Shown here piece after piece: positions 27,401 to 59,521 of a stretch of 64,000 bases of DNA (the first letter of the stretch is position 1; the number at the start of each line of letters is the position of its first letter). Both the position numbers and the translations under genes were made by a program. This DNA is from Schmidtea nova (Eukaryota): positions 124,558,001 to 124,622,000 of the forward strand of contig CM097882.1 of assembly GCA_044892505.1 (NCBI GenBank). The letters run 5' to 3'. A model generated the notes under the pieces. That model saw only the letters and a list, made by a program, of their open reading frames with translations, had not been told where the DNA came from and searched no databases.

Positions 27401-28620
27401 TGTGTGAAGACGGGTTTGGTGTAGTATCCTGTTGGAAAATGAGCCCCTCAATTTCTAGGAGAAAGGGAACAAGCTCATTTTCCAGAATGACACGGTTGTT
27501 TGTTGACATGTGTCTGCTCCTGGCGGTACTTCCTCAGAAAGTAGTTAATAGTTTCTTTGGGATGGCCAGTCAATGCAGCAGTTTCATTCTAACTTTTTCC
27601 ACAAAGGTAACATCCGTAAATAATGCCTTTCTGAAAGTCTGTAAGCTCTCCGATGAGCCATATTCTAAGAAAATGACAATCTTTCATTAACATGACTCAC
27701 TGTTATCACTGTTGTGTGTCTGATGTGAGTAGTCATATTATGTGAGTGTAAGTGCGTGCGTGTGTACATGTGCGCATGCAGGTGACCTTTGTTCCCATTG
27801 CTGTTCATATTTGCACTGCAGACGTTCATTATAAACTGCAATATGTAAATAACTGCCTGACTGGAGACTTTTGGTAGGCCGGGGTATATTGTGCCTCCCA
27901 TTGTTATTCCTGAACAGTCTGTGTTGATAATGTATGTTAGGTTTGGGTCGGGGTAGTTTCGTAGACTTGTATTTGACAATTTAGTTTTGCCTTTGCGAAT
28001 GCAGTTTCTAGTTCTTTGTTCCAGTTGATTTTTATGTTTTTTTAAAATTTTGTTTAGTTCGTTTAGTGGTGCAAGGATTTCACTGCAATATGGGATATGC
28101 TTGTAATAAAAATTTATCATGCCTAGAATACGTCTCAATTCTCTTGTTGTTTGGGAAGTGGAAATTTTTGATTGATTTATTTTGTCTTCTAACGGTCTTG
28201 TTCCGTTTTCGTTAAGGATGTGTCCGAGAAATTTAACTTCGTGTTTTAAGAATTCGCATTTCTTTATATTGATTTTGAGATTGTGATTTTTGAGGGTTTT
28301 GAGGACTTCTTTGATGTCTTGTATGTGTTAGGATTTGTTTGTTCACGCAATCAAAATGTCGTCTAGATACGCTACTGTGTTTCTGTAATTTCTCAATATT
28401 TTGTCCATGAATCTTTGAAAAGTCGTGGCAGCGTTTTTTAAACAGAACGGCATTTGGTTGATTTCGTATAACCCGATCGGTGTTATTATTGCTGTTTTTT
28501 ATATCATCTTCGTCTACTGGAATTCGGTCGTATGCTTTTGTAAATCGATTTTGCTGAAATTGTTTGAGATGTATATTCTGTTGATGACGTCGTTGATTAT
28601 CGTCAAATAAATATGTCAAG
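24440..28620 (-). mobile_element. 5'-truncated, decayed Gypsy LTR retrotransposon (RT, RNase H, integrase remnants, PPT, 3' LTR at about 24440-25090)
   Basis: RT remnant (KAYDRIPVDEDDIK), TDCSGITMGGTI-YQ...PIAFFSKKL...KELLAV...VYTDHKPL RNase H, GPY/F-like C-terminus, PPT-like TCCCCCCTTT on +; LTR similar to 61400-61560. Confidence 0.85.
27008..27884 (-). mobile_element. Internally deleted Tc1-like element inserted at a TA in the Gypsy RNase H
   Basis: TA TSD (27006-7, 27885-6); TIR of about 55 bp, (T/C)CC(T/C)GGCC(T)ACCAAAAGT(A/C)TCCAG; C-terminal Tc1 motifs FQQDN, WVPQSPVLNPIE, KGNITKY; removing it restores GGTIYQKK. Confidence 0.9.
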
Positions 28621-44606: not shown

Positions 44607-45413
44607 CTATTCCGTTTTATGGAAGTTGCAGGGCTTAGTGCATTTAAAAGCCTTTTCACCAAATTTGTATTGAAAATAGCAATGATTTTCATTTATTAAA
44701 TTGTTTCTCGCTTGTTTTTCTGGACTTTTGTCTCGATAATTATTGTATCTGTTTAGCGAGTTTGACCTGTTTATGTTGTATTGATTTGGTGAATGGTCTC
44801 TGTTGTAGTTTTGTCTGTTGTATCTTTCAGGAATTGAATTTGAATTGTTATTTTGCCTGTAGCATTTTTCTTTAATTTCGGCCAGTTCCGCTTTAATTTG
44901 TTTGTTTTCGACTATGATTTCATCAAATTTGCCTATTAGGGTGTTTAATAGTTTGTTCATGGTTTCATTTGTTTCGCTATATTTGTTGTTTGGTTGATTA
45001 TTGTAGTTTGTTTCGTTTTTGTTGTAGTTTTGGGTGCTGCAAGTAGTCGGATAAATTTCTTCGTTGATTTTATCCGCTATGTCAGCGAGTGTTTCGACAT
45101 CGGCGTTTTTGCTGGCAGCAAGGATCCGCCTGATTTCTGGTGGCATTGATCTCAAAAAGAATTTTTTAACTAGTTCATTTGAACCTGAGTTTGTGATATT
45201 TGGTTGCAAATATTCTTGTTTTTGTTTTAATTGTCTGAGGAAATCGGTGGGTTTATTGTCACCTAAGTGAGTGTTGTTGAGGCAAGATTCGAGCATTTGC
45301 CGTCTGTTTATTTTATTTTTGTTCGTCAGGATGTTGCACAGTTTGTTAAAGGGGTCGTCATCCTTAGAAATTTCTTCTATTTGGTCCGTAATTTCATTTA
45401 ATTTGTTACTGGA
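44607..45413 (-). pseudogene. gag: Gypsy gag, 3' part (continues from 61138-60846)
   Basis: Removing the Polinton and one TSD copy gives ...CSNIIAALSSNKLNEITDQIEE...; C-terminal CYFQYKFGEKAFKCTKPC motif. Confidence 0.85.
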
Positions 45414-45469
45414 AGTAGAGTAGGGGGAGCGCCCAAGAACAGGAACAGACCCCCCTCCCCCCAAAAAAA

Positions 45470-46268
45470 TTTTTTTTGTTTAAATGAAGTGAATTTTTTA
45501 AATTTTTTATTTTGTTTAAATGAAGTGAATTTTTGAATTTTATTTTTTTTGTTTAAATGAAGTCAATTTAATTTATTATTTTGTTTAAATGAAGTATTTA
45601 TTTTATTTTTATTTATTTATTTTTATTTATTTTTATTTATTTTTAATTTATTTTTAATTTATTTTAATTTATTTTAATTTATATTTATTTTTAATAATTT
45701 ATTTTTAGTTTATTTTTAATAATTTATTTTTATTAATTTATTTTTATTTATTTTTAGTTTATTTTTATTTATTTTTATTTTATTTTTATTTATATTTAAT
45801 AATTTATTTTAATAATTTATTTTAATAATTTATTTTTAATTTATTTTTAATTTGTTTTTAATAATTTATTTTTATATTTATTTTTAATTTAATTTTTAAT
45901 TTATATTTATTTATTTTAATTTATATTTAATAATTTATATTTAATAATTTATATTTATTTTTAATTTATTTAAATTTAAATTTATTTTTATATTTTCGGT
46001 TCAGTTTGAATAATAATAATTATNNNNNNNNNNNNNNNNNNNNNNNNNNNNNNNNNNNNNNNNNNNNNNNNNNNNNNNNNNNNNNNNNNNNNNNNNNNNN
46101 NNNNNNNNNNNNNNNNNNNNNNNNNNNNNNNNNNNNNNNNNNNNNNNNNNNNNNNNNNNNNNNNNNNNNNNNNNNNNNNNNNNNNNNNNNNNNNNNNNNN
46201 NNNNNNNNNNNNNNNNNNNNNNNNNNNNNNNNNNNNNNNNNNNNNNNNNNACTTAGAAAAATTTTTAA

Positions 46269-46313
<45 letters not shown>

Positions 46314-46480
46314 TATTATTATTATTAACTTAGAAAAAACTTTGAAAAATTTTTAAAATAATAATAATAAACTTTGAAAAAACTTAGAAAAATAATAATA
46401 ACTTAGAAAAAACTTTGAAAAATTATGAAATAAAGAACAACTAAATCACAAAACTTTGAAAAATTATGAAATAAAGAACA
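45470..46480. repeat. Left subterminal region: 4x TTTGTTTAAATGAAGT, an almost pure A/T tract, an N gap, (AAT)n and short repeats
   Basis: Seen directly in the sequence. Confidence 0.85.
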
Positions 46481-46499
46481 ACTAAATCACAAAACTTTA

Positions 46500-46885
46500 T
46501 TATAAATTATAAATGTCGTTATAATATGCTTTACGCATTTCTGACATTAAGATATGCACCGAATGATCTCTTTTAAAATCGTGACAGCATGCACATCCGT
46601 TTACACAGGATACTCTTAGTGAATCATTGCAAACTATGCAATTTTCAACGCACTTGACTCCAGCTCCTAGCACCATATCATAGTGAATCTCAAGTAATTG
46701 TTCGATATTGATCCCAGTAAGCTTGTATAGCTTATGAACCAATAACTCTGGTGCACAGTAATCCAAAGAATCTTTTATTTTTGGATATAATTCTTGAATT
46801 TTCTTCAGGATCACTTCAAATAAATAAGCTAAATAAAAAATATTAATAATATAGTTAATTAAAAATAATACTTACTTTTAGACAT
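46500..46885 (-). CDS. Cys/His-rich protein (112 aa), two exons (46885-46876, 46828-46500)
   Basis: ATG TCT AAA A|GTAAGT...TTTAG|CT TAT supplies an ATG and keeps the frame; CxxxCxxC...CxxxCxCCH...H..H. Confidence 0.75.
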
Positions 46886-46920: not shown

Positions 46921-47403
46921 TTAAACAAAATTAAATAATAAATCGAGATATTTTTCATCAATTAAATCATTATTGATTAATGAATTAATATAATTTTTAA
47001 TTTCATTTACTTGATTAAAATAATCCAATGTTTTAATTCCTAATATTACAACTTTTCCACTTGAAAAAATATTAATACAAATTGGGTTATAATTTATTAA
47101 TCTCAAAGCTGGAAATATTTTGGGTTCGTACCAGCACTCTGTTTTATTTTGCAATTCGTATAAATTTATGGATTTACCCATATCCAGTGTTATAGTGATC
47201 GATTGAATTTTTAAATCGGAAATTTTATATTTCAAATCATCTGGTTTTAACGGTTGCTTACATCCCATTACGCGACATTTTCCCGATCTGAAAAATAAAA
47301 TAGGGTACTTCCCGCTCCTATCTATAACTTGCTGAGGTTTCCCAACAGGAAATATCATGTTTGGAACTAAACACTTGCCCTTATAATTAATGTTACTTAT
47401 CAT
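46921..47403 (-). CDS. TATA-binding protein (TBP)-like protein, viral
   Basis: Two TBP-type repeats: ILFFRSGKCRVMGCK and DLKIQSIT...YEPKIFPALRL...INIFSSGKVVILGIK, versus TBP LIFSSGKMVCTGAK and DFKIQN...YEPELFPGL...LIFVSGKVVLTGAK. Confidence 0.85.
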   Translation of the reverse strand: MISNINYKGKCLVPNMIFPVGKPQQVIDRSGKYPILFFRSGKCRVMGCKQPLKPDDLKYKISDLKIQSITITLDMGKSINLYELQNKTECWYEPKIFPALRLINYNPICINIFSSGKVVILGIKTLDYFNQVNEIKNYINSLINNDLIDEKYLDLLFNFV

Positions 47404-47459
47404 TTTTATAAATTGAATAAATATAAACAATATTAAATTAATTAATTAATTAAATAAAA

Positions 47460-48083
47460 ATGGAATTAAGAAATGATGCAGTTTATCAAATAGTGGGCCC
47501 GAGTGGTAGTGGAAAAACATTATTTGTATGTAAATTGTTGCAATCAAAAATGTTTAAATCTAAATTCAATAAAATTTACTGGCATAGAGGAGCTGATGAA
47601 GAACATGGACTGACTCAAGATCAATTCTATAAATTAAAAATGACAATTATAAAAGGGTTTGATAAAAACTGGTCATCTAGATTACGACAAGGCGATGTTA
47701 TAATTATCGATGATTTGTACCAAGAAGCAAATAAAGAAAAAGATTTTAATAATTTATTCACAAAAATTAGTAGACATTTAGGAGTTACTGTAGTTTTCAT
47801 TACTCAAAATTTATTTCATCAAGGTGGTAGTCACAGAACTCGTAATTTAAATGTTCAATACTTGGTTATATTCAAAAACCCAAGAGATGCTACAATTATT
47901 GATTTTCTAGCAAGACAAGCTTACCCTAATGATCGGAAATTCTTAATTAATTCATTTCAAGATGCTACTAAAGTTCCTCATGGATATTTATTCTTTGATT
48001 TTACTCAACAATGTCCTGACGATTTACGTATCCGAACGGATATATTTAACGAAAAAGGAGTCACGGTTTATAAACAAAATTGA
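47460..48083 (+). CDS. A32/FtsK-like genome packaging ATPase
   Basis: Walker A GPSGSGKT, Walker B VIIIDD, ISRHLGVTVVFITQNLF. Confidence 0.93.
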   Translation: MELRNDAVYQIVGPSGSGKTLFVCKLLQSKMFKSKFNKIYWHRGADEEHGLTQDQFYKLKMTIIKGFDKNWSSRLRQGDVIIIDDLYQEANKEKDFNNLFTKISRHLGVTVVFITQNLFHQGGSHRTRNLNVQYLVIFKNPRDATIIDFLARQAYPNDRKFLINSFQDATKVPHGYLFFDFTQQCPDDLRIRTDIFNEKGVTVYKQN

Positions 48084-48104: not shown

Positions 48105-48266
48105 ATGTCATTTAAAAAAGTAATTGTCAAGTTAAATAAAGAAGCTGTTCAAAAAGCTGATCAAAAACTACTTAAAAAAGTTGATCAAAAATCTAAATTA
48201 GTTAAAAAAGTTGTCAAAAAGGTTGGTAAAAAAAAGAAACAAGTAAAGAAGTGGATAAAATTATAA
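48105..48266 (+). CDS. 53-aa lysine-rich small protein (candidate DNA-condensing core protein)
   Basis: MSFKKVIVKLNKEAVQKADQKLLKKVDQKSKLVKKVVKKVGKKKKQVKKWIKL; 21 of 53 residues are Lys; fills the gap in a compact gene cluster. Confidence 0.7.
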   Translation: MSFKKVIVKLNKEAVQKADQKLLKKVDQKSKLVKKVVKKVGKKKKQVKKWIKL

Positions 48267-48296
48267 ACGAAATAAATATATACAAAAATCTTAATC

Positions 48297-48626
48297 ATGA
48301 AATTTGAACGTAGTTTACCGTATTTTAATGCTTTGGTTAAAGCTCCAACAAATAAGCGAATGATAATTTTACAAGCTTTCCCACCCTTTGTTATTGATGA
48401 TTTACTTGAAATCGTTTTTAATATTGTTCATGGTAATGTAAATATTAGTAGATCAAAGAAAATTGAACTACAAAAACATAAAAATTCACTTTTTTCATTA
48501 GTAAATACCAAAAATAGAAATCTTATGCGAAAAATAATATATAAACAAAAGGGTGGGTTTCTCGGTACATTAATTCCAATAGTATTATCAGCAATAAGCG
48601 CAATCTCATCTTTAAGAAATGGGTAA
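48297..48626 (+). CDS. Conserved small Polinton protein with an adenovirus pX-like C-terminus
   Basis: EIVFNIVHGNV core and QKGG|FLGTLIPIVLSAISAI, resembling adenovirus pX MRGG|ILPLLIPLIAAAIGAV. Confidence 0.7.
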   Translation: MKFERSLPYFNALVKAPTNKRMIILQAFPPFVIDDLLEIVFNIVHGNVNISRSKKIELQKHKNSLFSLVNTKNRNLMRKIIYKQKGGFLGTLIPIVLSAISAISSLRNG

Positions 48627-48688: not shown

Positions 48689-49777
48689 ATGAAGAAAATC
48701 ATGAAGAATATAAAAACGATATGGACAAACCCAAAAGATCCCGATGGTTTTGGTTCAGTCAAAAAATTGGTAAAAAGAATAAAAAGTTCAAAGAATGAAA
48801 CTCAGAAATGGTTATCTGATCAATTGGCATATAGTTTAAATAAACCAATGTTGAAAAGATTTCCTACACGGAAATATAAAACTTTTGGGGGTAACGATTT
48901 ATGGTAAATGGATTTGATGGAAATGATTCCTTATTCTAAAATTAACAAGGGTTACAAATATATTTTGACTTGTATTGATGTTTTTAGCCGTTATGCACGA
49001 GCTATTCCAACAAAAACTAAATCTGCTAATGAAATGGCTGAGACTATTGAATCTTTATTTAAAGATGGGAAGCCACGTAATTTACAAACTGATTTGGGTA
49101 AGAAATGAAATTAAATTATTTAATTATTTATTTTTAATTTAGGAAAAGAGTTTTATAACAGCAAAGTAAAAGAAGTGATCAAAGGAATCAATCATTATTC
49201 TGTATTTTCTCAATTCAAAGCTGCTCATGTTGAAAGATTAATTCGTACTTTAAGAGATCGTTTGAAAAAGTATTTTGTGTATCAAGGTAACAAAACATGG
49301 ATAAGTGTTTTACCGAAAATTATTTTCAGTTACAATCGTTCACCGCATTCGGGATTAAATAAAATGAAACCTATCGATGTATATTCAAATAATAATTTTG
49401 ACGGATGGATAAAAGATAGATTAAAATCAATTAATAAAAAACCGAAATATAAAGTAGGTGATTATGTGAGAATGAGTAAAATCAGTGCTTCTCTCTTCAT
49501 CAAAAATTTTGATAGTAATATGAGTGATGAAGTATATCAAATCTCAAATGTTGATACTAATCAAAATCCTGTCATGTATACTATTTCCGATCATGAAAAC
49601 AATGTAATCGAAGGGAAATTCTACGAACAAGAACTTCAAGTTATTCCAGCTCCCACAGTTTTTAGAATTCAAAAGATTTTAAAAACCAAAACTGATGGGA
49701 AATATAAACAATATTACGTTAAATGGCATGGCTATGAAACTCCAAGTTGGATATCTGAAAAACAATTGATTAAATAA
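48689..49777 (+). pseudogene. int: Retroviral-type (rve) integrase with C-terminal chromodomain; one intron (49098-49142) and one premature TAA (48905-48907)
   Basis: DDE motifs W*MDLM, LQTDLG|KEF and HVERLIRTL; chromodomain YYVKWHGY...SWI; splicing GTAAG...TTTAG restores DLGKEFYN. Confidence 0.92.
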
Positions 49778-49782
49778 ATATT

Positions 49783-50820
49783 ATGAAAGAAAACCAGTTT
49801 TATATGATTTTGCCTAGCAATGCATGTCCTCTTATTTATCCTAATAATGAAGCTAGTAATTTTAATGTAGAATTTCAAAATCCGATTTATTTAAATAGTA
49901 ATGACGATTGGGAAGTTGCTTTGATTGATTTTACTTTTGTGTATAATTTATTTCCGTATTATAGTAATTCTTTTATTCAAATTGAAACTAAAAGAGAAAT
50001 TCAAGAAATTAGTTATTTGAGAATTAATAATCAAAATAAAACAATTCAAGTTATAGTTTCTCAACCTAGTTCAGACACTGATGTATTTATTGAAAAATAT
50101 AATTATTTAGTGATTGTTTGCCCACATGTTCCATTTAAAAGTACATTTCCAGATCTTGAACATGCAAAAAGTTTTGGATTGGAAAATATATCAATTACAA
50201 GTGAAAATGATCATTGTCGTTTAAAATTACCAAAATTCACGAATGATAATAGTCTTGAACAATTTGGAATTTTAATAAATTATGACATTAAAACTGTTAA
50301 TGATTATTATTTTCAAGATGAATTATTCATAACGTCATTACCGGAATTACAAGGATATTTAATGAAAATTAATCCATGGCCATTTAAAGAATTGAAACTT
50401 GTCAATAATGAATTGGTTAAAATTATTCTTCAGGATAATATTTCAAAAATTACTTTTGATTCAAATTTAACCAAATCTCTGGGTCTACAGAAACAAACAT
50501 ATACTGATACAGAAATAATTGGTGTAAAAATCCCCAAAATTTTACAACTTCATCAGCAAATGTTCATTTACAGCAACATTATTGAACCAGTAACTGTTGG
50601 AGATGTACGAGTTCCCCTCCTTAAATCAATTTGGATCAAGAAATATGACCAAGGTGAAGTTGTACAAATTGAAATAAAGAATCCAATGTATTTGCCGATT
50701 TCAACATCAACTATAAACAACATTGAAATCAATATTCGTGATGACAGTGGAAAATTAATTAAATTTTCAAAAGATACAAAGACTCATTTGACTCTACATT
50801 TTCGTAAAATAAATGATTAA
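49783..50820 (+). CDS. Minor capsid (penton-like) protein 1
   Basis: FYMILPSN...WEVAL...FIYSNIIEPVTVGDVRVPLL...NNIEINIRDDSG...LTLHFR. Confidence 0.88.
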   Translation: MKENQFYMILPSNACPLIYPNNEASNFNVEFQNPIYLNSNDDWEVALIDFTFVYNLFPYYSNSFIQIETKREIQEISYLRINNQNKTIQVIVSQPSSDTDVFIEKYNYLVIVCPHVPFKSTFPDLEHAKSFGLENISITSENDHCRLKLPKFTNDNSLEQFGILINYDIKTVNDYYFQDELFITSLPELQGYLMKINPWPFKELKLVNNELVKIILQDNISKITFDSNLTKSLGLQKQTYTDTEIIGVKIPKILQLHQQMFIYSNIIEPVTVGDVRVPLLKSIWIKKYDQGEVVQIEIKNPMYLPISTSTINNIEINIRDDSGKLIKFSKDTKTHLTLHFRKIND

Positions 50821-51838
50821 AAAAGATTTTTATGTTAATTTACCAGGCAATTCTTGTCCATTGACACATCCCAATAATAAAGCTGGAAAATTCAATGTTG
50901 AATATCAAAACCCAATTTATTTGGATGGTAGTTGGGAAGTTGCTCTTATGGATTTTACTTTTGTATACAATGAATTTCCATTTTATAATAGTTCAAGTAT
51001 AAAATTTATTAGAAATGAATTACATTCTAGTTATGAATATTTCAATTTTAACCAACAAAAGAAAGAATATGATATAAGTCACGATTCTAATTATTATTTA
51101 ATGTATATTGATGGTAATATTTTAAATGTAAATTGTAAATATTTTCCATTTCAAATAATATTTGATAGTGTTGATGAAGCTAAAAAAAAATTAGGGTTTC
51201 AAGAAAAAGCTGTGACATTTAATGATGAATTAAACAAAATTAAAATTCCAGCAAATGAAAATAAAAAACTTGATGATACTATACGATTTACTATAACTTA
51301 TACTTTTCCTGTTGAATACACAGATAATTTCAAAGACGATTTAATAATAAATAATCTTGCTGAATTATCTGATCAAATTGAAACTTTTTATCCACATCCA
51401 TTTAAAGTGATTGATATTAAAGAAGGAAAATTAATCAAATTAATTCTTGAAGATGATATAACTAGTGTAAAATTTAGTAGGAATTTAGCAAATTCATTAG
51501 GATTAGTTGAACAAGAATTCTTTGACAAAATTATTGATGGCGTATATTATCCACAAGTTTTAAAACTTCATCAACAAATGTTCATCTATACGAATATTAT
51601 TCAACCAATTCTTGTTGGTGACATGTCAGTTCCCCTATTGAAATGTGTTTGGGTTGAAAAACATGAAAAGGGTGATTTGGTTCAAATTGTTGAGAAAAAT
51701 CCAATGTATTTTCCGGTCAGTTCCACATATATAAACAATATTGAAATCAATATTCGTGATGACAGTGGAAAAATAGTTAAATTTGCAAAAGAAGACAAAA
51801 CTTACTTGACATTACATTTCCGTAAAATAAATGAATAA
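50813..51838 (+). CDS. Minor capsid (penton-like) protein 2, tandem paralog
   Basis: Same N- and C-terminal motifs as 49783-50820 with a divergent middle. Confidence 0.88.
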   Translation: MIKKDFYVNLPGNSCPLTHPNNKAGKFNVEYQNPIYLDGSWEVALMDFTFVYNEFPFYNSSSIKFIRNELHSSYEYFNFNQQKKEYDISHDSNYYLMYIDGNILNVNCKYFPFQIIFDSVDEAKKKLGFQEKAVTFNDELNKIKIPANENKKLDDTIRFTITYTFPVEYTDNFKDDLIINNLAELSDQIETFYPHPFKVIDIKEGKLIKLILEDDITSVKFSRNLANSLGLVEQEFFDKIIDGVYYPQVLKLHQQMFIYTNIIQPILVGDMSVPLLKCVWVEKHEKGDLVQIVEKNPMYFPVSSTYINNIEINIRDDSGKIVKFAKEDKTYLTLHFRKINE

Positions 51839-52238
51839 TCCAGATATTATCAGTTTATATAGCAACAGCCAATCAGGTGGAGAATTACCGTATTTTGTAG
51901 GTAAGCAATATGGAACTGGATGGTTGAAAACGATAGGTAGATTTGCATTACCAATTCTTAGACGTATTGGAAATTTTGGTATGAAAACTGCCAATGATGT
52001 GTTAAATAATAATTCAAAGATTTTACCTGCACTAAAATCCAATGCTATTTCTGAAATTAAAGATTCATTGCCCGATGTGATTCATCATTTGCCACAAGTA
52101 ATTAGTAAAGTAACTGATGTGTTTAACGAAAATAAAACTGAAAATAAACAAAATGGCGGAATTCTTAAACGTAAAAGAAATATGAAGAAACATATAAACA
52201 AAAGAATGAAAGGATATGGTACAATTTTTGAAAAATGA
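51831..52238 (+). CDS. Small Polinton core/membrane-active candidate protein (PZ-like)
   Basis: QSGG and QYGTG motifs followed by the amphipathic WLKTIGRFALPILRRIG; basic C-terminus with QNGG and KGYG. Confidence 0.65.
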   Translation: MNNPDIISLYSNSQSGGELPYFVGKQYGTGWLKTIGRFALPILRRIGNFGMKTANDVLNNNSKILPALKSNAISEIKDSLPDVIHHLPQVISKVTDVFNENKTENKQNGGILKRKRNMKKHINKRMKGYGTIFEK

Positions 52239-53461
52239 TTAGTGCAAAATCTGAATTATGTCTTTTTGATAGACCATCTCCTCAAGCAGTAATTGAACAT
52301 GGTGCATTTGAAGATATTTACCCAACAAATTCAATTACAGATGCTGGGACATCATCTATTCAATTTTACATCAACGGATCTCAAACTGAATATTTAGATT
52401 TGAACGATACTTTACTATCTCTTCAGGTCAAAGTTGTAAACAAATCGGGTGAAAATTTAGGATTGGATGCTGATGTTACTCCCAACAATTTCTTTTTCCA
52501 AACTCTTTTTAAAGAAGCAGAATTAATTTTCAATTCTACTAAAGTTGAAGGGGGAAATGATACATTTACACACAAAGCCATGATTGAAACTATTCTCAAC
52601 TACAATAGTGATACAAAACACACATCTTTAACTCCAATAGGATACAATGACCATGATCTTACTAGAAAAGCATGGATTGCAAAATCAAAACCATTTTCAA
52701 TTTGTTCTCCATTACATTTCGATTTCATGGAACAACCCAAATATTTATTACCAGGTGTTAGTGTTCAAATTAAATTGACGAGATCAAATCCATCCAATAG
52801 TTTGACAAGCACAAAAATTGAACCTATAATTGAATTATTAGACGCAAAATTAATGGTTAGAAGAGTTCGAGTAGAACCATCAGTTTATGCTGGGCATCAA
52901 ATTGGACTTGGTACAAGAAATGCAATTTATCCAATAAGAAATAAGGAAGTTGTAGAATTTTCATTGCCAATGGGTTCTTCTTCGTTTTATAAGGAACAAA
53001 TCTTTGGCGATAGACGATTACCAAACTTTATTCTTGTAGCATTTCAAGGAAATAAAAGACATAGTGGTTCTTTTACTGAAACATATTCTATTTACGATTA
53101 TTTTAATGTCAAATCATTAACTTTATCGAAAGGAAGTGATTATCGTGAAAAATATTCTCAAGATTTTGAAAATGATAATTGTAGTACTAGTTATATGCAA
53201 TCTATTGTCCGTAACCTTGGTTACCTGAATAAGAGTATGAATTGTGGTATTTCTTTATCAGATTGGAAAAGCAAATATCCTTTTTTCACCTTCGTTTTGG
53301 CTCCAGATTTTGACCTAAATCAAAGTCAATTACCTCAACAAGGTAATCTAAGACTTGATATTAAATTTGGTACACCATTGACTGAATCAGTTTCTGTAAT
53401 TGTATATGGAGTTTTTGAAAAGGAATTACAAATTACAGCTAATAGAACAATATTGATTTAA
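52235..53461 (+). CDS. Double jelly-roll major capsid protein (PY)
   Basis: KSELCLFD...IQFYI...YLDLNDTLL...LHFDFMEQPKYLLPGVSVQIKL...GNLRLDIKFG...VIVYGVFE pattern and 408-aa length typical of Polinton MCP. Confidence 0.9.
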   Translation: MISAKSELCLFDRPSPQAVIEHGAFEDIYPTNSITDAGTSSIQFYINGSQTEYLDLNDTLLSLQVKVVNKSGENLGLDADVTPNNFFFQTLFKEAELIFNSTKVEGGNDTFTHKAMIETILNYNSDTKHTSLTPIGYNDHDLTRKAWIAKSKPFSICSPLHFDFMEQPKYLLPGVSVQIKLTRSNPSNSLTSTKIEPIIELLDAKLMVRRVRVEPSVYAGHQIGLGTRNAIYPIRNKEVVEFSLPMGSSSFYKEQIFGDRRLPNFILVAFQGNKRHSGSFTETYSIYDYFNVKSLTLSKGSDYREKYSQDFENDNCSTSYMQSIVRNLGYLNKSMNCGISLSDWKSKYPFFTFVLAPDFDLNQSQLPQQGNLRLDIKFGTPLTESVSVIVYGVFEKELQITANRTILI

Positions 53462-53512
53462 TTGAAAATTATTGGTTTAATATAAACTAATTTTAATAAA
53501 TTAATAAAGTAA

Positions 53513-53891
53513 ATGAAGTAAGATTTATTTTAAATAATTAAATTTTATTGATTTTAGTTCAATTCAGGTAGATCAGATTGCTAGAAAATTGATTGGATCG
53601 GAATTTCTAGGAGTTTTTCCTCTAGATAAAATACCGTATATAGATGTGAATAAAGCATTGATTGTCAATACTCAAACATCAAATCTCAAAGGCGAACATT
53701 GGCTTGCAATTTATAATAAACCCGATAAAATATACGTGTTTGATCCAATGGGATTTTATTATCCACCGATATTATTGAAAAAATTATCGTCAATGTTAAA
53801 ACCAATAGAATATAACAGAATTCGATATCAAAATCCTATGACAAAAACCTGTGGGCAACATTGTTTAGCTTGGCTAAAATATATGAAATAA
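53513..53891 (+). CDS. Adenain-like cysteine protease (112 aa), two exons (intron 53518-53557)
   Basis: ATG AA|GTAAG...TTTTAG|T TCA gives MNSIQVDQIARKLIGSEFLGVFP; catalytic GEHW, FDPMG, YQN and TCGQHC intact. Confidence 0.92.
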
Positions 53892-54004
53892 AATTTTTTA
53901 TTATAAAACGACTTTTATTATAAAACGACTTTTTCTATTTTTGGTATTCACTAATACAAAAGTGAATTTTTATGTTTGAATTTGTTAAATTATAGTTGAA
54001 AATA

Positions 54005-54665
54005 ATTTTAATATTGTAAAATATTAAATTAATTTTAAATTACATATTGTAAAATATTTAATTAATTTTAAATTACATATTGTAAAATATTTAATTAATT
54101 TTAAATTACATATTGTAAAATATTTAATTAATTTTAAATTACATATTGTAAAATATTTAATTTTAAATTACATATTGTAAAATATTTAAATTAAATTATA
54201 TTTAAAATAATTTCGTTTAAATAAACAACATTTTTAACAACAAGCCAACTTAAGTAAGTAAGTTTAATTTTTTATGAATATTTTTTAATTTTTTCATTAC
54301 AGATTTTTGAAATTATGCCAAACATTATTATGCCAATGAAATTTTCAAAGAAAATTATACCAAACAATGTTATACCAAACAATATTATGCCAAACAATGT
54401 TATGCCAATGAAATTTTCAAAGAAAATTATACCATCGATACTTCATGTTAAATGTAAGTATTTATATATTGACGAAATATATTATTATCAATTAAATGTT
54501 TATTTTTATAATTGATAGATTTTTATATGAATTTAATTAATTTTTATAATTGATAGATTTTTATATGAATTTAATTAATTTTTTATAATTGATAGATTTT
54601 TATATGAATTTAATTAATAATCGATAGATTTTTATATGGATTTAATTAATTTTTATAATAAATAT
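54005..54665. repeat. Internal non-coding spacer with 33-bp (about 6x), 15-bp-based and 38-bp (about 4x) tandem repeats
   Basis: ATATTGTAAAATATTTAATTAATTTTAAATTAC at 54011, 54044 and onward; ATTGATAGATTTTTATATGAATTTAATTAA at 54511, 54549 and onward. Confidence 0.9.
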
Positions 54666-54887
54666 ATTTTATAAATGATATATTTATATATTATTTTTAA
54701 AATATATTTAATGTAAATAAGAAAAAATCAATTAAAGAACAAATAAATTAAACAAGAGTTTATTCATGAAAATCATTAATTTTCCAAATAGGTTTTATCA
54801 CGTTTTCGGTTTGTTTAAATCCTTGTAAGATAATTTGAATTTGATACATTGAATTTTCATCTAATTTGCCTAAATCTGTTTCTTTTT

Positions 54888-55573: not shown

Positions 55574-58500
55574 ATGGAAAGATATTATGCATACCCTCAT
55601 AACTGTAAAACCTCCTACATTTGTCCTTTTTGCAAATCTACTTCGTCCTCTTCGTATATTGACTTTTACAATACTCATTGCGATCATTTAGATCAATTTA
55701 AAACATCTAAAAAATCAATTTTTAAATTACCGCTTAAAAGAAAATGTAATGAAAATAATTCAATCCCAATCAAAATTAACAAGTCAGATCTTACTGATGA
55801 TATTTCTTCAGTTGATCCTTCAGTTGTTCCTTCAGTTGATCCTTCAGATATAGTTGTAATTTCTGATGATGATGATGATGACATTCTTGGTAATGATACC
55901 ATTCCTGATGATAACATTCTTGATAATGATACCATTCCTGATGATGATAACATTCTTGATAATGATACCATTCTTGATGATAACATTCTTGATATAAATA
56001 TTCTTTCTGATTTTGTGGTTGTAGACACTTTTGATCCTATCGATAATATTCAAATTGGTGGTTCTTTTGATAAAATTTGTGACGATAAATACTCTTTAGT
56101 TCCTGAAGTACAGGTTGGTGGCTCCATTTTACCTGTTGTTAAATTTGATTTAAATAAATCACATGCTATAATGAAAATGATTGTAACTAACTTGAATTTA
56201 AAAAGCATGTTTGTACCTGATAATTTAATTAATAAATTAAATAATGTAATTGAAACGATGGGAACGGTTAAAATTCAATTTTGCATCGAAGTTGAGTTTG
56301 AAAAAGATGGTGCTTTTCAAACTATAGTTATTTCTAACTCTGCACAACCTGTCACAGATACCTTTATAGACGATGGCATTAATATTCTTAACGAAAAAAT
56401 TACATTAATTAATAATAGAGGTAGTAACTGGATAATTAATAAAATTAATGAAATCCATTTCATATTAACAAAATTTTCTGAGATTAGTAAGTTAATAGGT
56501 TACGGTGGTATTGACACTCCTGAATCTTTAAAGTCAAAACATTGTGTTGCAAATGTTCAGAATTCTGATGACTTGTGCTTTATATATTCTGTTTTAGTAA
56601 TTATTAAATATGATGAGATATCTGGTCGTAAAAATAAACATAGGATCAGTAATTACAATCTTTCAGATGTTAACTTTAGTCCTTCTGATTTGCCTATGCG
56701 TCTTTGCAATATCCCAAAGTTTGAAGCTAAAAACCCGGGATATGCGATTAATGTACTTTCATATGATGAATCTGGAATTCTAGACACTAAGCCTGAAGTT
56801 TTCAAACATCCGTGTATTGACATAATTCATAGGTCGAAAGTAGTAGACGGAATTCCTATTAACTTGATTCTTTTGCAAAATGGTGACTCTTTTCATTATA
56901 TAGCAGTAACCAATCTTGATAGGCTTTTAAATCTTGACAATAAATCAATATCTGGTACTCGTATTCAAAGTTTATGGTGCCATCGATGCTTGAATGGGTT
57001 TAGATATCAAGATTCTTTTGTTCGTCATCAAGAGTTGTGTTCTAAAAATCAATTAGGCACAACTCTATATACTTTGCCTAAAAATCCTTATTTGACATTT
57101 AGTAATTGGGGCAAAACAATTACTCCACCTTTTGTAGTTTACGCCGATTTTGAGGCAATCTTACCTGCTGATGATAAGTACTTTCAAAGACATGTCCCAA
57201 TATCTGCCGGTCTTTTACTTGTAAATAATTTCACTGGTGAAAAGATTTACAAGAGTTTCTTAGGTCTTGATTGCGTTACTAATTTTCTTGCTGAAATTAA
57301 CAATATAGGTGAAGAAATTGTTTTTCCTTTTTATAAAAACAATTACAAAAAACCACTTATTATGACATTCGATAATAAAAGATCTTTTGCCTCATCTACT
57401 AATTGTTATCTTTGTAAAAATCGTTTAGTTAATCCGGTTAGAGACCATGATCACTACACTGGTGAATTCTTGGGAGCTGCTTGTTTAAAATGTAATCTTA
57501 CTAGACAGATTCGTAAGGAACTACCGGTTATTTTTCATAATTTAAAAGGGTATGACATGCACCATATTCTTAAATATGGTTTGGCTAATTTTTCAACTTG
57601 GAAAATATCATGTATTCCAACAACTAGTGAAAAATTCCTTACTTTGTCTGCAAGAGTCGGCGATTTAACAATTAAATTCATCGATTCTTGTCAATTTATT
57701 AACTCCAGTTTAAATGATGCGGTTAAAACATTGACTTCATTACCTTTGACTAGATCTGAATTCACCGGGACTATTGTTGACTGTAAGGGTATTTTTCCTT
57801 ATGATTTTGCAACATCTTTAGAAATTCTTAACAACACTTATGAATTACCACCAATCTGGGAGGGTGTTAAGCAGGCTGAATATGACAAGGCATTAGTTAT
57901 TTGGAGGGAATCCCAGTGTCACACTCTGTGTGACTATATGATGGTCTACCTTAAACTGGATGTTTTTCTTCTTGCTGATTTCTTTCAACAGTTTAGGGCT
58001 AAATCTATAGCTCACAATAAACTTGAGCCTTTGAATTTTTTGGGGATTCCAGGTATGTCGTGGGCTTCTGCGCTTATTACCTTGGATGAACCTATTGAGT
58101 TGCTCCAGGATATGGAGATTTATAATTTTTTCGAAGGGGGGATCCGTGGTGGTTTGACATTTGTCAACAAGCACCATGTAGTATCCTCCGAAACGACTGA
58201 ACTTTTATACATTGACATAAATAATTTATACGGGTGGGCTTTAAGTCAAAAATTACCTTATGGTGAATTTAAATGGATCACTGATGAGAATAAATTAAAT
58301 AAATAAATTAAATTAATGGATACTGATTTGGCTATTTTGACTTATGGCGTGACTTTTGAAGTGGATCTTGAAATACCTTCAGAAATTCACGAAAAATTAA
58401 ATGATTTTCCGGTAGCAGCAGAGAAAATGTGTGCTCCGGGTTCAAAGGTTGAGAAGTTAATGCTGACGCATTATCCAAAGTTCAACTATGTTGTTCATTG

Positions 58501-59521
58501 GAGGCTTCTCAAGCTTTTTGTTTCTTTGGGTGTTAAAATAACACGAGTTCATCGGGCTGTTCAGTACAATCAGAAACCCATTTTTAAAAAATATATAGAT
58601 ACAAACACTGAACTTAGGGCAGCATCTTCTACAGCTTTAGATAAAAACTATTACAAACTCTTGAATAATAGTCTTTATGGAAAAACGGTTGAAAATCTTA
58701 AGAAACGACTCAATTTACGACTATGTAATTCACCATCAAAACTGATTACATATACTTCAAAACCTACCTTTAGAAAAACTTATAGAATTGACGATGACCT
58801 AGTTTCTGTCTTACTTAATAAGGACTCTGTGTGTTTAGATAGACCCAGTTACATTGGCCAAACTGTACTGGATTTATCTAAACTTAGGATGTATCAACTG
58901 CAGTATGAAGAATTACAAAAATATCGTAATGAATTCAACTGCGAAATTAACATCGTTGCTGGTGACACCGATTCATTTTTTCTTGAGATTAGAAATTGTA
59001 GGTTAGATGTTCTGTTACCTGCGAGGATAAGAGATAACTTACTTGACACTTCTAATTATGATCCGAATCACCCATTATACAGTAAGAACCTAGATTCCGT
59101 CATTGGTAAATTCAAAGACGAGAATAAAGGATTCAAGTATGATGAGTGGGTATTCCTTAGACCAAAGTGTTATAGTCTTTTAGGCGATGAAGAGTGCATT
59201 AAGGCTAAGGGTATAACATTGAAGGATACTAAACTGAATCATCAGTCGTATCTGGATTGTTATAATAATAATTCAATAGTTTCTGTTGATCAGTCGAGAA
59301 TAGTTAGTAAGAATCACCAACTCTTTACTAATAAATATTCGAAAATTGCCTTGACTAATCTTGATGATAAAAGACTTTGGGTTGATAAAAATGAAAGTCT
59401 TGCATACGGACATTATAAGGGATGTGGCTCGTTTATAGACCAATCAAAAGATCAGGTTGGTGTTCCAGTTTCAGATCCAGCTCTCAATTCAAATTATATA
59501 TCCAATTCAGATTTGTATTGA
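55574..59521 (+). pseudogene. polB: Protein-primed family B DNA polymerase (terminal protein, OTU-like, exonuclease with endonuclease VII-like insert, polymerase); one in-frame TAA at 58304-58306
   Basis: VYADFE, FHNLKGYD, YLKLDV, DHDHYTG...CLKCN, YIDINNLY, KLLNNSLYGK, AGDTDS, LRPKCY; both ORFs lie in the same frame. Confidence 0.95.

Follow-up and report, generated by a model that had tools for sequence, protein, structure and literature searches.

Gene content of the element

The window analysed here, a stretch of 64,000 nucleotides of Schmidtea nova DNA (GenBank assembly GCA_044892505.1, contig CM097882.1, positions 124,558,001 to 124,622,000 of the forward strand), is AT-rich (about 27% GC), carries LTR-retroelement debris, and contains no Rfam family and no tRNA. 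Within it lies a Polinton/Maverick element encoding a TBP-like protein together with an A32-type packaging ATPase, an rve integrase with a chromodomain, a double jelly-roll major capsid protein, an adenain-like protease, and a protein-primed PolB (Table 1). No terminal inverted repeats were found in the window, where the left side runs into an N gap, although they are present inside longer contigs in two related loci, designated L060 and L062 (loci of relatives are referred to below by such L numbers). The integrase and polymerase genes are interrupted by in-frame stops, and the insertion in the window is probably decaying. None of the 8 window proteins looked up in a collection of 15 billion proteins was present there.

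Table 1. Features of the element, with positions in the window and supporting observations
Position	Strand	Feature	Observations
46500..46885	-	Cys-rich 104-aa ORF downstream of the TBP-like gene, with a possible short first exon	No Pfam family; one relative in L001
46921..47403	-	TBP-like gene, 160 aa plus stop, intact	Pfam TBP 60.7 bits; AF2 pLDDT 91.8; no internal stop
46924..46962	-	C-terminal tail (residues 148-160), not shared by the 22 aligned relatives	Low-confidence helix, pLDDT 59-72
46963..47229	-	C-terminal lobe (residues 59-147), predicted complete TBP repeat (S1-H1-S2-S3-S4-S5-H2) with both Phe and the TFIIB-contact loop	Pfam 50.2 bits alone
47230..47403	-	N-terminal lobe (residues 1-58), predicted four beta-strands and no helices	Only the FFRSGK hairpin resembles a TBP repeat in sequence
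47404..47459	.	Divergent spacer between the TBP-like and ATPase genes	56 bp, 2 G/C
47422..47428	+	TATAAAC motif	38 nt upstream of the ATPase ATG; no same-strand gene upstream, so it cannot be a poly(A) signal
47460..48083	+	A32-type packaging ATPase, intact	Pfam Pox_A32 28.3 bits against cut-off 22.8; 57-75% identical in relatives
48069..48075	+	TATAAAC motif	36 nt upstream of the Lys-rich ORF
48105..48266	+	Small Lys-rich ORF, 53 aa	Relatives have small genes called at the same place with the motif upstream; the correspondence is by position only
48262..48268	+	TATAAAC motif	35 nt upstream of the PX-like gene
48297..48626	+	109-aa gene with an Adeno_PX-like C-terminus	Pfam Adeno_PX 25.6 bits against cut-off 25
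48689..49777	+	rve integrase with chromodomain, broken	4 internal in-frame stops, no frameshift between the pieces; rve core and Chromo domain match on the separate pieces; relatives have a single intact rve+Chromo gene
49783..51838	+	Two tandem paralogous ORFs (345 and 341 aa, 44.5% identical)	At the place where a minor capsid (penton) gene would be expected, a suggestion from position alone; TATAAAC at 49703 and 50712
51831..52238	+	Conserved 135-aa ORF (ORF135), no function assigned	TATAAAC at 51730
52193..52199	+	TATAAAC motif	42 nt upstream of the capsid gene
52235..53461	+	Major capsid protein, double jelly-roll (predicted fold), intact	AF2 pLDDT 86.8; Foldseek hits to iridovirus, PBCV-1, Sputnik and mavirus capsid proteins at E 1e-16 to 1e-13
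53481..53891	+	TATAAAC motif followed by the adenain-like cysteine protease gene	Pfam Peptidase_C5 24.9 bits against cut-off 21.3; the ORF has no ATG of its own, and a short 5' exon is possible
55574..59521	+	Protein-primed PolB, broken	Pfam DNA_pol_B_2 35.3 bits; 1 internal in-frame stop; reading frame continuous in L010 and L059

A TBP homolog with an asymmetric predicted fold

The initial annotation had reported a 160-aa TBP homolog with both repeats, encoded by a Polinton-like virus, and this observation holds. The reading frame runs from an ATG at 47403 to a stop at 46921-46923, and while a mechanical ORF list starts it earlier, at a TTG, 22 relatives start at the ATG. The protein matches Pfam PF00352 with E 1.3e-16 and 60.7 bits against a cut-off of 22.9, and a phmmer search of PDB sequences returned only TBPs, the best being archaeal at 7e-12. 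The AlphaFold model (pLDDT 91.8, pTM 0.80) has a predicted TBP saddle fold, and its top 44 Foldseek hits in the PDB are all TBPs, with E 5.5e-9, TM 0.66-0.70 over about 174 columns and 23-28% identity, whereas the next hit has E 0.056. Scores for archaeal and eukaryotic TBPs differ by only a few bits and do not separate an archaeal from a eukaryotic origin, and the alignable part is about 85 residues.

The 2 halves of the protein are very different from one another. In the C-terminal repeat (residues about 59-147), the Phe of IFPAL and of IFSSG (F97 and F113), which the initial annotation had listed as DNA-intercalating positions, align with the Phe of archaeal TBP repeats and are each 99% conserved in 113 family members. 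The N-terminal half, described initially as shortened, is more than that, since both helices of a TBP repeat are absent from the model and canonical TBPs have 2 complete tandem repeats of 5 strands and 2 helices each. Alone it scores 13.8 bits (E 0.052), below the cut-off and only over the FFRSGK hairpin, and a profile-profile comparison of the 2 halves aligns just 20 columns, so the case for a second lobe rests on the predicted fold. F38 in the N-lobe is 99% conserved, R44 98%, and M46 100%. The initial claim that the first N-lobe Phe is missing is uncertain, since a Phe at residue 18 is kept in 69% of the family, with Y or L in a further 13%, a comparison made on sequence without the geometry of the site.

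Cellular TBPs contact TFIIB/TFB through an acidic pair in the C-lobe loop (C.L3.2 and C.L3.4 of Ravarani 2020, PMC7221094), and the family keeps this pair, with 89% E (plus 4% D) at the first position and 97% E at the second. The copy in the window retains only 1 of the 2, being non-acidic at the position that is 97% conserved. The basic cluster on N-lobe helix H2, on which TFIIA, Mot1, TAF1, and Brf dock in cellular TBP (PMC7221094), has no counterpart in the model because the helix itself is absent.

A diverged family conserved within Polintons

The initial annotation had set as grounds for rejection the lack of a TBP profile or fold match, or a recent copy of host TBP found only in this insertion, and neither applies. 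A first search gave 28 relatives at 37-72% identity, and a profile search of 1.84 billion representatives gave 56 hits at E<=1e-30. About 112 of the sequences in hand carry the N-half plus a single C-half, whereas canonical TBPs in the same list have 2 C-type repeats. The gene lies next to the ATPase in 17 loci and next to the protease in 12, and in many loci it sits near an element end. It is also present in 5 of 5 contigs that were sampled through the capsid protein, at 39-53% capsid identity. The median dN/dS over 85 pairs is 0.27, indicating purifying selection. No gene called in these 12-17 kb elements has a Pfam hit to TFIIB or RNA polymerase. A search of IMG/VR viral contigs found no relative of the TBP-like protein or of the ATPase, and the lineage is visible only in metagenome, Logan, and genome assemblies. 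Such elements were also seen in the assemblies GCA_031406105.1 and GCA_965192255.1. A more distant, longer subgroup (160-190 aa, some on GC-rich contigs) lies on contigs too short to judge its context.

A strand-specific ATAAAC motif upstream of packaging and capsid genes

The initial annotation had pointed to a TATAAA in the nearly pure A/T spacer separating the TBP-like gene from the head-to-head ATPase gene. In 96% A+T sequence a bare TATAAA is expected by chance and is not evidence by itself, but the copy at 47422 is part of TATAAACA, which matches a motif that is highly nonrandom across relatives. TATAAAC occurs about 10x and CTATAAAC about 36x over the Markov expectation, with 72 sense against 3 antisense occurrences peaking at -45 to -31 relative to start codons. 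In a set of 46 nonredundant late genes (ATPase, PX-like, and capsid) from 23 loci, ATAAAC, mostly as TATAAAC, lies at -60 to -25 in 36, against 2 of 36 TBP-like genes (Fisher p 9e-12), although the loci are related and these counts are not fully independent even after removing near-duplicates. The motif lies 30-45 nt upstream of the start codons of these genes and of several small genes. In L059 it occurs 11 times on the gene strand and 0 times on the other, and in L064, at 42% GC, the counts are 10 and 0. The pattern has exceptions, as the motif is weaker and more variable in L065, a PolB upstream region in L060 also carries it, and several genes (protease, ORF135, integrase) have it at about -80 to -100 or not at all. 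The box also varies in the base before ATAAAC, which may be T, C or G, as in L065 against L059 and L064. A poly(A) signal of the preceding gene was considered and rejected, since the spacing to the next ATG is tight, the spacing from the previous stop is broad, and the motif occurs in head-to-head spacers.

The TBP-like genes tend to have a different upstream region. A canonical TATA box is present in 17 of 36 against 5 of 41 late genes (p 9e-4), and in about 10 loci a CCAAT box lies 15-25 nt upstream of the TATA box.

Possible roles in element transcription

Of the interpretation offered initially, a virus-specific promoter factor or a decoy redirecting host Pol II or TAFs, only part is supported. 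The TBP homology and the Polinton setting are confirmed, and the promoter-factor reading gains real support from the ATAAAC motif in front of morphogenesis genes, whereas redirection of TAFs is unlikely given the absence of helix H2 from the model. That TBP is not a canonical Polinton gene is right for the surveys we read, and the only prior mention we found is a "TBP" label in a 2021 gene-map legend (PMC8502044). The motif and its association with one class of genes are new here.

Our preferred explanation, which we hold at a probability of about 0.5, is that the gene encodes a minimal, asymmetric TATA-binding protein that is a core gene of one Polinton/Maverick lineage. What the analysis itself establishes is the TBP profile match and predicted fold with its unequal lobes, the large, syntenic family under purifying selection, the retained acidic pair, the lack of detected polymerase or TFIIB genes, and the positional, strand-specific motif, whereas DNA binding, TFIIB binding, promoter use, and the regulatory role are all inferred. 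In this view, host TBP and a CCAAT-binding factor would transcribe the TBP-like gene from an ordinary host-type promoter, and its product would then bind the ATAAAC-type boxes, with the canonical C-lobe on the TATA-like 5' half (an assignment by analogy with TBP-DNA structures) and the remodeled N-lobe reading the unusual 3' half. Recruitment of host TFIIB and Pol II through the acidic pair would switch on the morphogenesis genes, making this a late-promoter factor, and without helix H2 the protein would escape the host factors that dock there (TFIIA, Mot1/BTAF1, TAF1). A difficulty is that ATAAAC boxes are mostly TATA-like, so host TBP could read them unaided, and in a sample without TBP-less sister elements the motif's conservation could reflect host TBP rather than the element's protein. 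With a broken integrase, a broken polymerase, and a departure from the family at one TFIIB-contact position, the copy in the window may no longer work.

A stronger form of this idea, possible but somewhat less likely than not, is that a whole lineage of small integrating DNA viruses runs a two-tier Pol II program of its own, in which a host-type CCAAT-plus-TATA promoter makes a minimal TBP that has shed the lobe through which the cell regulates TBP but keeps the TFIIB handle, and which then reads a private ATAAAC promoter code in front of the virion genes. This would be a compact promoter-recognition system orthogonal to the host's, built from one 150-aa protein and a 6-7 bp box.

The strongest alternative, though an unlikely one, is that the protein is a general TBP substitute or competitor that binds any TATA box on the element and in the host and titrates host TFIIB, boosting all element transcription or shutting down host genes, with no special link to the ATAAAC class. 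The canonical C-lobe with both Phe and the acidic pair, the TATA-like character of the boxes, and the loss of the regulator-docking lobe, which would suit a deregulated competitor, are all compatible with this. However, the strict C after the A-run, the strand specificity, and the split into 2 promoter classes are not needed under such a model, and the strong conservation of the N-lobe suggests a specific job rather than simple loss.

Less likely still is a silencing or latency factor that occupies the element's own promoter boxes but cannot build a full preinitiation complex without a TFIIA/TAF docking lobe, keeping the integrated element quiet. The missing helix H2 and the integration of the elements in host DNA fit this reading, but keeping the TFIIB-contact pair is hard to explain for a pure blocker, and TFIIB plus TBP suffices for basal initiation in archaea and in vitro. 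A nontranscriptional DNA-bending protein acting at A/T-rich termini, or in genome packaging or replication, is very unlikely. The gene does sit near an element end next to the packaging ATPase in many loci, and TBP-like folds occur in nontranscription proteins, with rolling-circle Rep proteins among the Foldseek tail hits at E 0.06, but its position varies between beside the ATPase and after the protease, the TFIIB-contact residues are conserved, and no ATAAAC enrichment in the terminal repeats was examined or found. A recently captured or decaying host TBP fragment with no function of its own is refuted for the family by the low identity to cellular TBPs, the shared truncated architecture in more than 100 diverged sequences, the synteny in about 30 metagenomic loci and 5 of 5 capsid-sampled contigs, and the dN/dS, even though the damaged element, odd tail, and odd contact residue of the window copy would suit it.

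How Polintons/Mavericks are transcribed is largely unknown, although they are among the most widespread virus-like elements of eukaryotes and the proposed ancestors of several DNA virus groups. A lineage-wide, element-encoded TBP paired with a lineage-wide promoter box would explain how a 13-17 kb element with no polymerase separates early and late genes, and would extend virus-encoded TBPs from giant viruses and herpesviruses to the smallest eukaryotic dsDNA viruses. It would also offer a natural minimal TBP, in which half a lobe is missing while the TFIIB contacts are kept, showing which parts of TBP are needed for promoter recognition and which only for regulation. The motif gives annotators a practical marker for gene starts in these elements.

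Comparison with known TBP-like proteins

The predicted saddle fold is shared with yeast, human, plant, and archaeal TBPs, and the C-lobe is a full repeat with both Phe and the acidic pair. The protein differs from these cellular TBPs in its length of 160 aa against about 180 aa for the core, in its low identity, in the helix-less N-lobe, and in being encoded by a mobile virus-like element rather than the host.

The TBP-like proteins of giant viruses (Nucleocytoviricota, of mimivirus, phycodnavirus, and asfarvirus B263R type), whose existence the initial annotation had noted, are the best matches in the viral structure library at E 5e-8 to 1e-3, but they are only 10-20% identical and mostly 200-500 aa, and they work beside a virus-encoded RNA polymerase. 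In the dsDNA-virus TBP-like sequences analyzed in PMC7221094, the first TFIIB-contact position is only about 40% conserved, and almost all of these come with their own TFIIB-like gene, whereas here neither a polymerase nor a TFIIB gene was detected and the acidic pair is 89-97% kept.

A gene labeled "TBP" appears on maps of midsize eukaryotic linear dsDNA (MELD) viruses (Starrett et al. 2021, PMC8502044), a paper that gives no analysis of architecture, distribution, or promoters, and whether or not this is the same family, our relative L060 has a TRAF/MATH gene immediately upstream of its TBP-like reading frame, which is split in that copy.

The closest match in working logic, if our inference is correct, is to the herpesvirus late-gene factors KSHV ORF24, EBV BcRF1, and HCMV UL87, in which a nuclear DNA virus without its own polymerase encodes a TBP-like protein that reads a noncanonical TATA variant in front of late or structural genes and brings in host Pol II. 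There is no membership in that family, as only weak fold hits appear, to herpesvirus U58 and ORF75 at E about 7e-3 and TM 0.42-0.51. Those are large proteins with an embedded TBP-like domain that bind Pol II directly and need further viral partners. Finally, TBP-related factors that have lost TATA binding, such as TRF2/TBPL1 and Giardia TBP (PMC3142196, PMC12209930), are diverged TBP paralogs with altered DNA specificity, but they lack the intercalating Phe, of which the family described here keeps 3 at 99%.

The TBP-like reading frame and its predicted structure

The observation behind the initial annotation holds. The minus-strand gene is an uninterrupted reading frame of 160 codons, and although a mechanical ORF list begins it nine codons earlier at a TTG, all 22 aligned relatives begin at the position of the ATG at 47403. 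The encoded protein matches Pfam TBP with an E value of 1.3e-16 and 60.7 bits against a curated cut-off of 22.9, and a search of PDB sequences returned only TATA-binding proteins, with archaeal TBPs first at 7e-12 followed by microsporidian, yeast, plant, and human TBPs. A profile of the family did the same, reaching 1.8e-21. The spacer to the ATPase gene contains only two G/C and includes TATAAA, as had been stated.

An AlphaFold2 model built on 23 family members is confident (mean pLDDT 91.8, pTM 0.80). In this model, residues 62-144 form a complete TBP repeat of five strands and two helices (the C-lobe), residues 2-48 form four strands with no helix (the N-lobe), and residues 148-160 are a low-confidence tail that the 22 aligned relatives do not share. 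A Foldseek search of the PDB returned 44 hits below E 1e-3, all of them TBPs, the best at E 5.5e-9, with TM of 0.66-0.70 normalized to the query, about 174 aligned columns, and 23-28% identity, while the 45th hit has E 0.056. A TM in this range cannot come from the C-lobe alone, which is 56% of the chain, so part of the N-lobe superposes as well.

By sequence, however, the N-half is barely a TBP repeat. Alone it scores 13.8 bits (E 0.052), and only over the hairpin that contains FFRSGK, and a profile-profile comparison of the family's N-halves and C-halves aligns only 20 columns. The initial annotation described this repeat as shortened, which is right but understated because both helices are gone. 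Its further claim that the N-terminal repeat lacks one Phe is uncertain; a Phe at residue 18 is kept in 69% of the family, with Y or L in another 13%.

The element surrounding the gene

The setting is a Polinton. Around the gene lie an A32-type ATPase, a small gene with an Adeno_PX-like end, an rve integrase with a chromodomain, two paralogous ORFs of 345 and 341 aa, an adenain-like protease, and a protein-primed PolB, together with a 408-aa protein whose confident model (pLDDT 86.8) matches the double jelly-roll capsid proteins of iridovirus, PBCV-1, Sputnik, and mavirus at E 1e-16 to 1e-13. The copy in the window is damaged, with 4 internal stops in the integrase frame and 1 in the PolB frame, both of which we handled as separate ORF pieces. 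There is no frameshift between the pieces, and the TBP, ATPase, and capsid genes are intact. No terminal inverted repeats were found in the window, where the left side of the element runs into a run of N.

Coordinates of features in the window and in related loci (L-numbers denote loci carrying relatives)
Location	Strand	Feature
window 46921-47403	-	TBP-like gene, 160 codons
window 47404-47459		56-bp spacer to the ATPase gene
window 46025-46251		N run at the left side of the element
window 46252-46499 and 53892-54700		Blocks of A/T-rich tandem repeats, at the left edge next to the N gap and after the protease gene
window 46829-46885 and 53512-53560	- and +	Possible very short first exons, at the Cys-rich ORF downstream of TBP and at the protease ORF
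window 47422	+	TATAAAC, 38 nt from a start codon
window 48069	+	TATAAAC, 36 nt from a start codon
window 48262	+	TATAAAC, 35 nt from a start codon
window 52193	+	TATAAAC, 42 nt from a start codon
window 48105-48266	+	53-aa Lys-rich ORF between the ATPase and PX-like genes
window 49783-51838	+	Two tandem paralogous ORFs, 345 and 341 aa
window 55574-58306	+	N-terminal part of PolB
window 4943-7897, 27665-28138, 44607-45464		LTR-retroelement remains: a gag with three zinc knuckles, an RNase H fragment, and an Asn-rich gag-like ORF
L060:3952-4941, L056:3227-3475, L001:448-900		Genes beside the TBP-like gene encoding a TRAF/MATH domain protein, an SH2 domain fragment, and a RING finger
L060:4989-5466		TBP-like reading frame split into two pieces

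The two paralogous ORFs are 44.5% identical and lie at the position where a penton-type gene would be expected; the relative locus L012 also has two copies, while L010, L002, and L044 have one. The Lys-rich ORF, with TATAAAC 36 nt upstream, may encode a DNA-condensing core protein, and relatives L060, L061, and L062 have small genes called in the same place with the TATAAAC motif at about -33 to -35. The Cys-rich ORF downstream of TBP and the protease ORF both lack an ATG, but each is preceded by a short ATG-bearing stretch followed by GTAAG...TAG that would splice in frame, which suggests very short first exons, although no tool predicted these introns. The N-terminal part of PolB carries Asp-rich repeats and a Cys/His motif that weakly hits Pfam Endonuclease_7 (20.6 bits, below the cut-off). 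The orientation of PolB relative to the capsid module differs among relatives, being the same as in the window in L064 and opposite in L010, L012, L059, L060, L062, and L065. The two tandem-repeat blocks do not match each other, whereas relatives L060 and L062 have repeat-rich terminal inverted repeats. The flanks are LTR-retroelement debris, and no host gene, tRNA, or Rfam family occurs in the 64 kb.

A family of TBP-like genes conserved across the lineage

A word-indexed search found 28 relatives of 100-181 aa at 37-72% identity, all of which carry the TBP domain and come from metagenomes or run assemblies. A full profile search of 1.84 billion cluster representatives found 56 proteins at E<=1e-30. 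Among the sequences collected, about 112 have the same layout of one N-half plus one C-half, while the canonical TBPs in the same list have two C-type repeats, no N-half match, and Pfam scores of 130-450 bits. A more distant subgroup of TBP-like proteins of 160-190 aa (P0108 and P0120-P0175 of the profile search; loci L056 and L057) has a longer N-terminus and a longer linker, and some of its members lie on GC-rich contigs.

In 52 metagenome loci plus 3 further contigs, the gene sits next to the ATPase in 17 and next to the protease in 12, and full gene orders are conserved in L002, L010, L012, L039, and L044. To remove the bias of sampling by TBP, we also sampled by the capsid protein, and all five contigs long enough to judge (L059, L060, L062, L064, and L065; capsid identity 39-53%) carry a TBP-domain gene, making it a core gene of the lineage. 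The terminal inverted repeats of L060 and L062 lie well inside longer contigs, so these are integrated elements. The TBP-like genes are under purifying selection, with a median dN/dS of 0.27 over 85 pairs with dS of 0.05-1.5. A recent copy of host TBP found only in this insertion, the condition under which the initial annotation would have failed, is therefore not what we observe. Individual copies do decay, as in the otherwise well-preserved integrated relative L060, where the reading frame is split. The genes found beside the TBP-like gene in L060, L056, and L001 are accessory genes of a host-signaling type.

Conserved residues and the predicted TFIIB contact

Across 113 family sequences, three Phe (38, 97, and 113) are 99% conserved, as is N111, while R44 is 98% and M46 is 100% conserved. 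Ravarani et al. 2020 (PMC7221094) show that two acidic residues in the C-lobe loop contact a conserved Arg and Thr of TFIIB/TFB in archaea and eukaryotes, and that a basic cluster centered on N-lobe helix H2 docks TFIIA, Mot1/BTAF1, TAF1, and Brf1/2. In the dsDNA-virus TBP-like sequences analyzed there, the first of the acidic positions is about 40% conserved, and almost all of those viruses encode their own TFIIB-like protein. In the family described here, the two positions, aligned to the corresponding archaeal TBP residues, are 89% E (plus 4% D) and 97% E, although the copy in the window alone is non-acidic at the 97% position. No gene of the elements examined has a TFIIB or RNA polymerase domain, and helix H2 of the N-lobe does not exist in the model. 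The simplest reading is a TBP that would still plug into host TFIIB but could not be handled by the host's TBP regulators.

Two classes of upstream region

We took 100 nt upstream of every non-overlapping ORF of 70 aa or more in 30 loci of at least 2.5 kb, plus the window element. TATAAAC occurs in 71 of 201 regions against 7 expected from a first-order Markov model, and CTATAAAC occurs in 30 against 0.8. The motif is strand-specific, with 72 sense against 3 antisense occurrences (65 and 3 after removing near-duplicate regions), and peaks 31-45 nt upstream of the ATG. The core is ATAAAC, with the preceding base mostly T and sometimes C or G. In non-redundant sets, the difference between the three late genes taken together and the TBP-like genes gives a Fisher p of 9e-12.

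ATAAAC in sense orientation at -60 to -25, by gene, in non-redundant sets
Gene set	Regions with the motif
ATPase	13/17
PX-like	11/14
Capsid	12/15
These three together (23 loci)	36/46
TBP-like	2/36

In L059, the motif occurs 11 times on the strand of the morphogenesis genes and never on the other, and in L064, at 42% GC, the counts are 10 and 0; in both it is absent in front of TBP and PolB. In the window, all nine plus-strand copies lie upstream of plus-strand reading frames. We considered whether the motif could be a poly(A) signal of the preceding gene, but it is not. Its distance to the next ATG is tight (52 of 122 at 30-39 nt), its distance from the previous stop ranges from -60 to more than 300, and it is present upstream of the ATPase in the three head-to-head arrangements (the window, L047, and L017), where no same-strand gene lies upstream.

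The TBP-like genes tend to have a different promoter. A canonical TATA box lies at about -35 to -47 in 17/36 of them, against 5/41 for the late genes (p 9e-4), and in about ten loci a CCAAT box, in either orientation, lies 15-25 nt further upstream. Accessory genes next to TBP in L065 show the same pattern.

A model for the function of the TBP-like protein

The initial annotation had proposed a virus-specific promoter factor, or a decoy redirecting host Pol II or TAFs, and this interpretation is supported only in part. What the analysis establishes is the fold (as a predicted model), the family, its synteny and selection, the conserved contact residues, and the two promoter classes, while the way the protein works, including any binding to DNA or to TFIIB, is inferred from these. 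In the most likely scheme, host TBP and a CCAAT-binding factor would transcribe the TBP-like gene, and its product would then bind the ATAAAC boxes and recruit TFIIB and Pol II to the virion genes. In TBP-DNA structures, the C-lobe sits on the 5′ half of the box and the N-lobe on the 3′ half, which would fit a box whose 5′ half is ordinary and whose 3′ half, with a C after the A-run, is not. Alternatively, the protein could be a general competitor for TFIIB, a silencer that blocks the boxes, or a non-transcriptional DNA bender. For the family, the evidence excludes a dead host-derived fragment.

Relation to known systems

A full-text literature search found no description of a TBP gene in Polintons or Mavericks, with the single exception of a figure legend in Starrett et al. 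2021 (PMC8502044), where a "TBP" gene is labeled on maps of midsize eukaryotic linear dsDNA (MELD) viruses. Relative L060 has a TRAF/MATH gene immediately upstream of its split TBP-like reading frame, and the same lineage may therefore already have been drawn in that work. As far as we could find, the truncated architecture, the status of the gene as a core gene, and the two-class promoter pattern are new, while virus-encoded TBP-like factors as such are already known. Although there is no family membership, since only marginal fold hits appear, the closest analog in the proposed working logic is the herpesvirus late-gene TBP-like factor.
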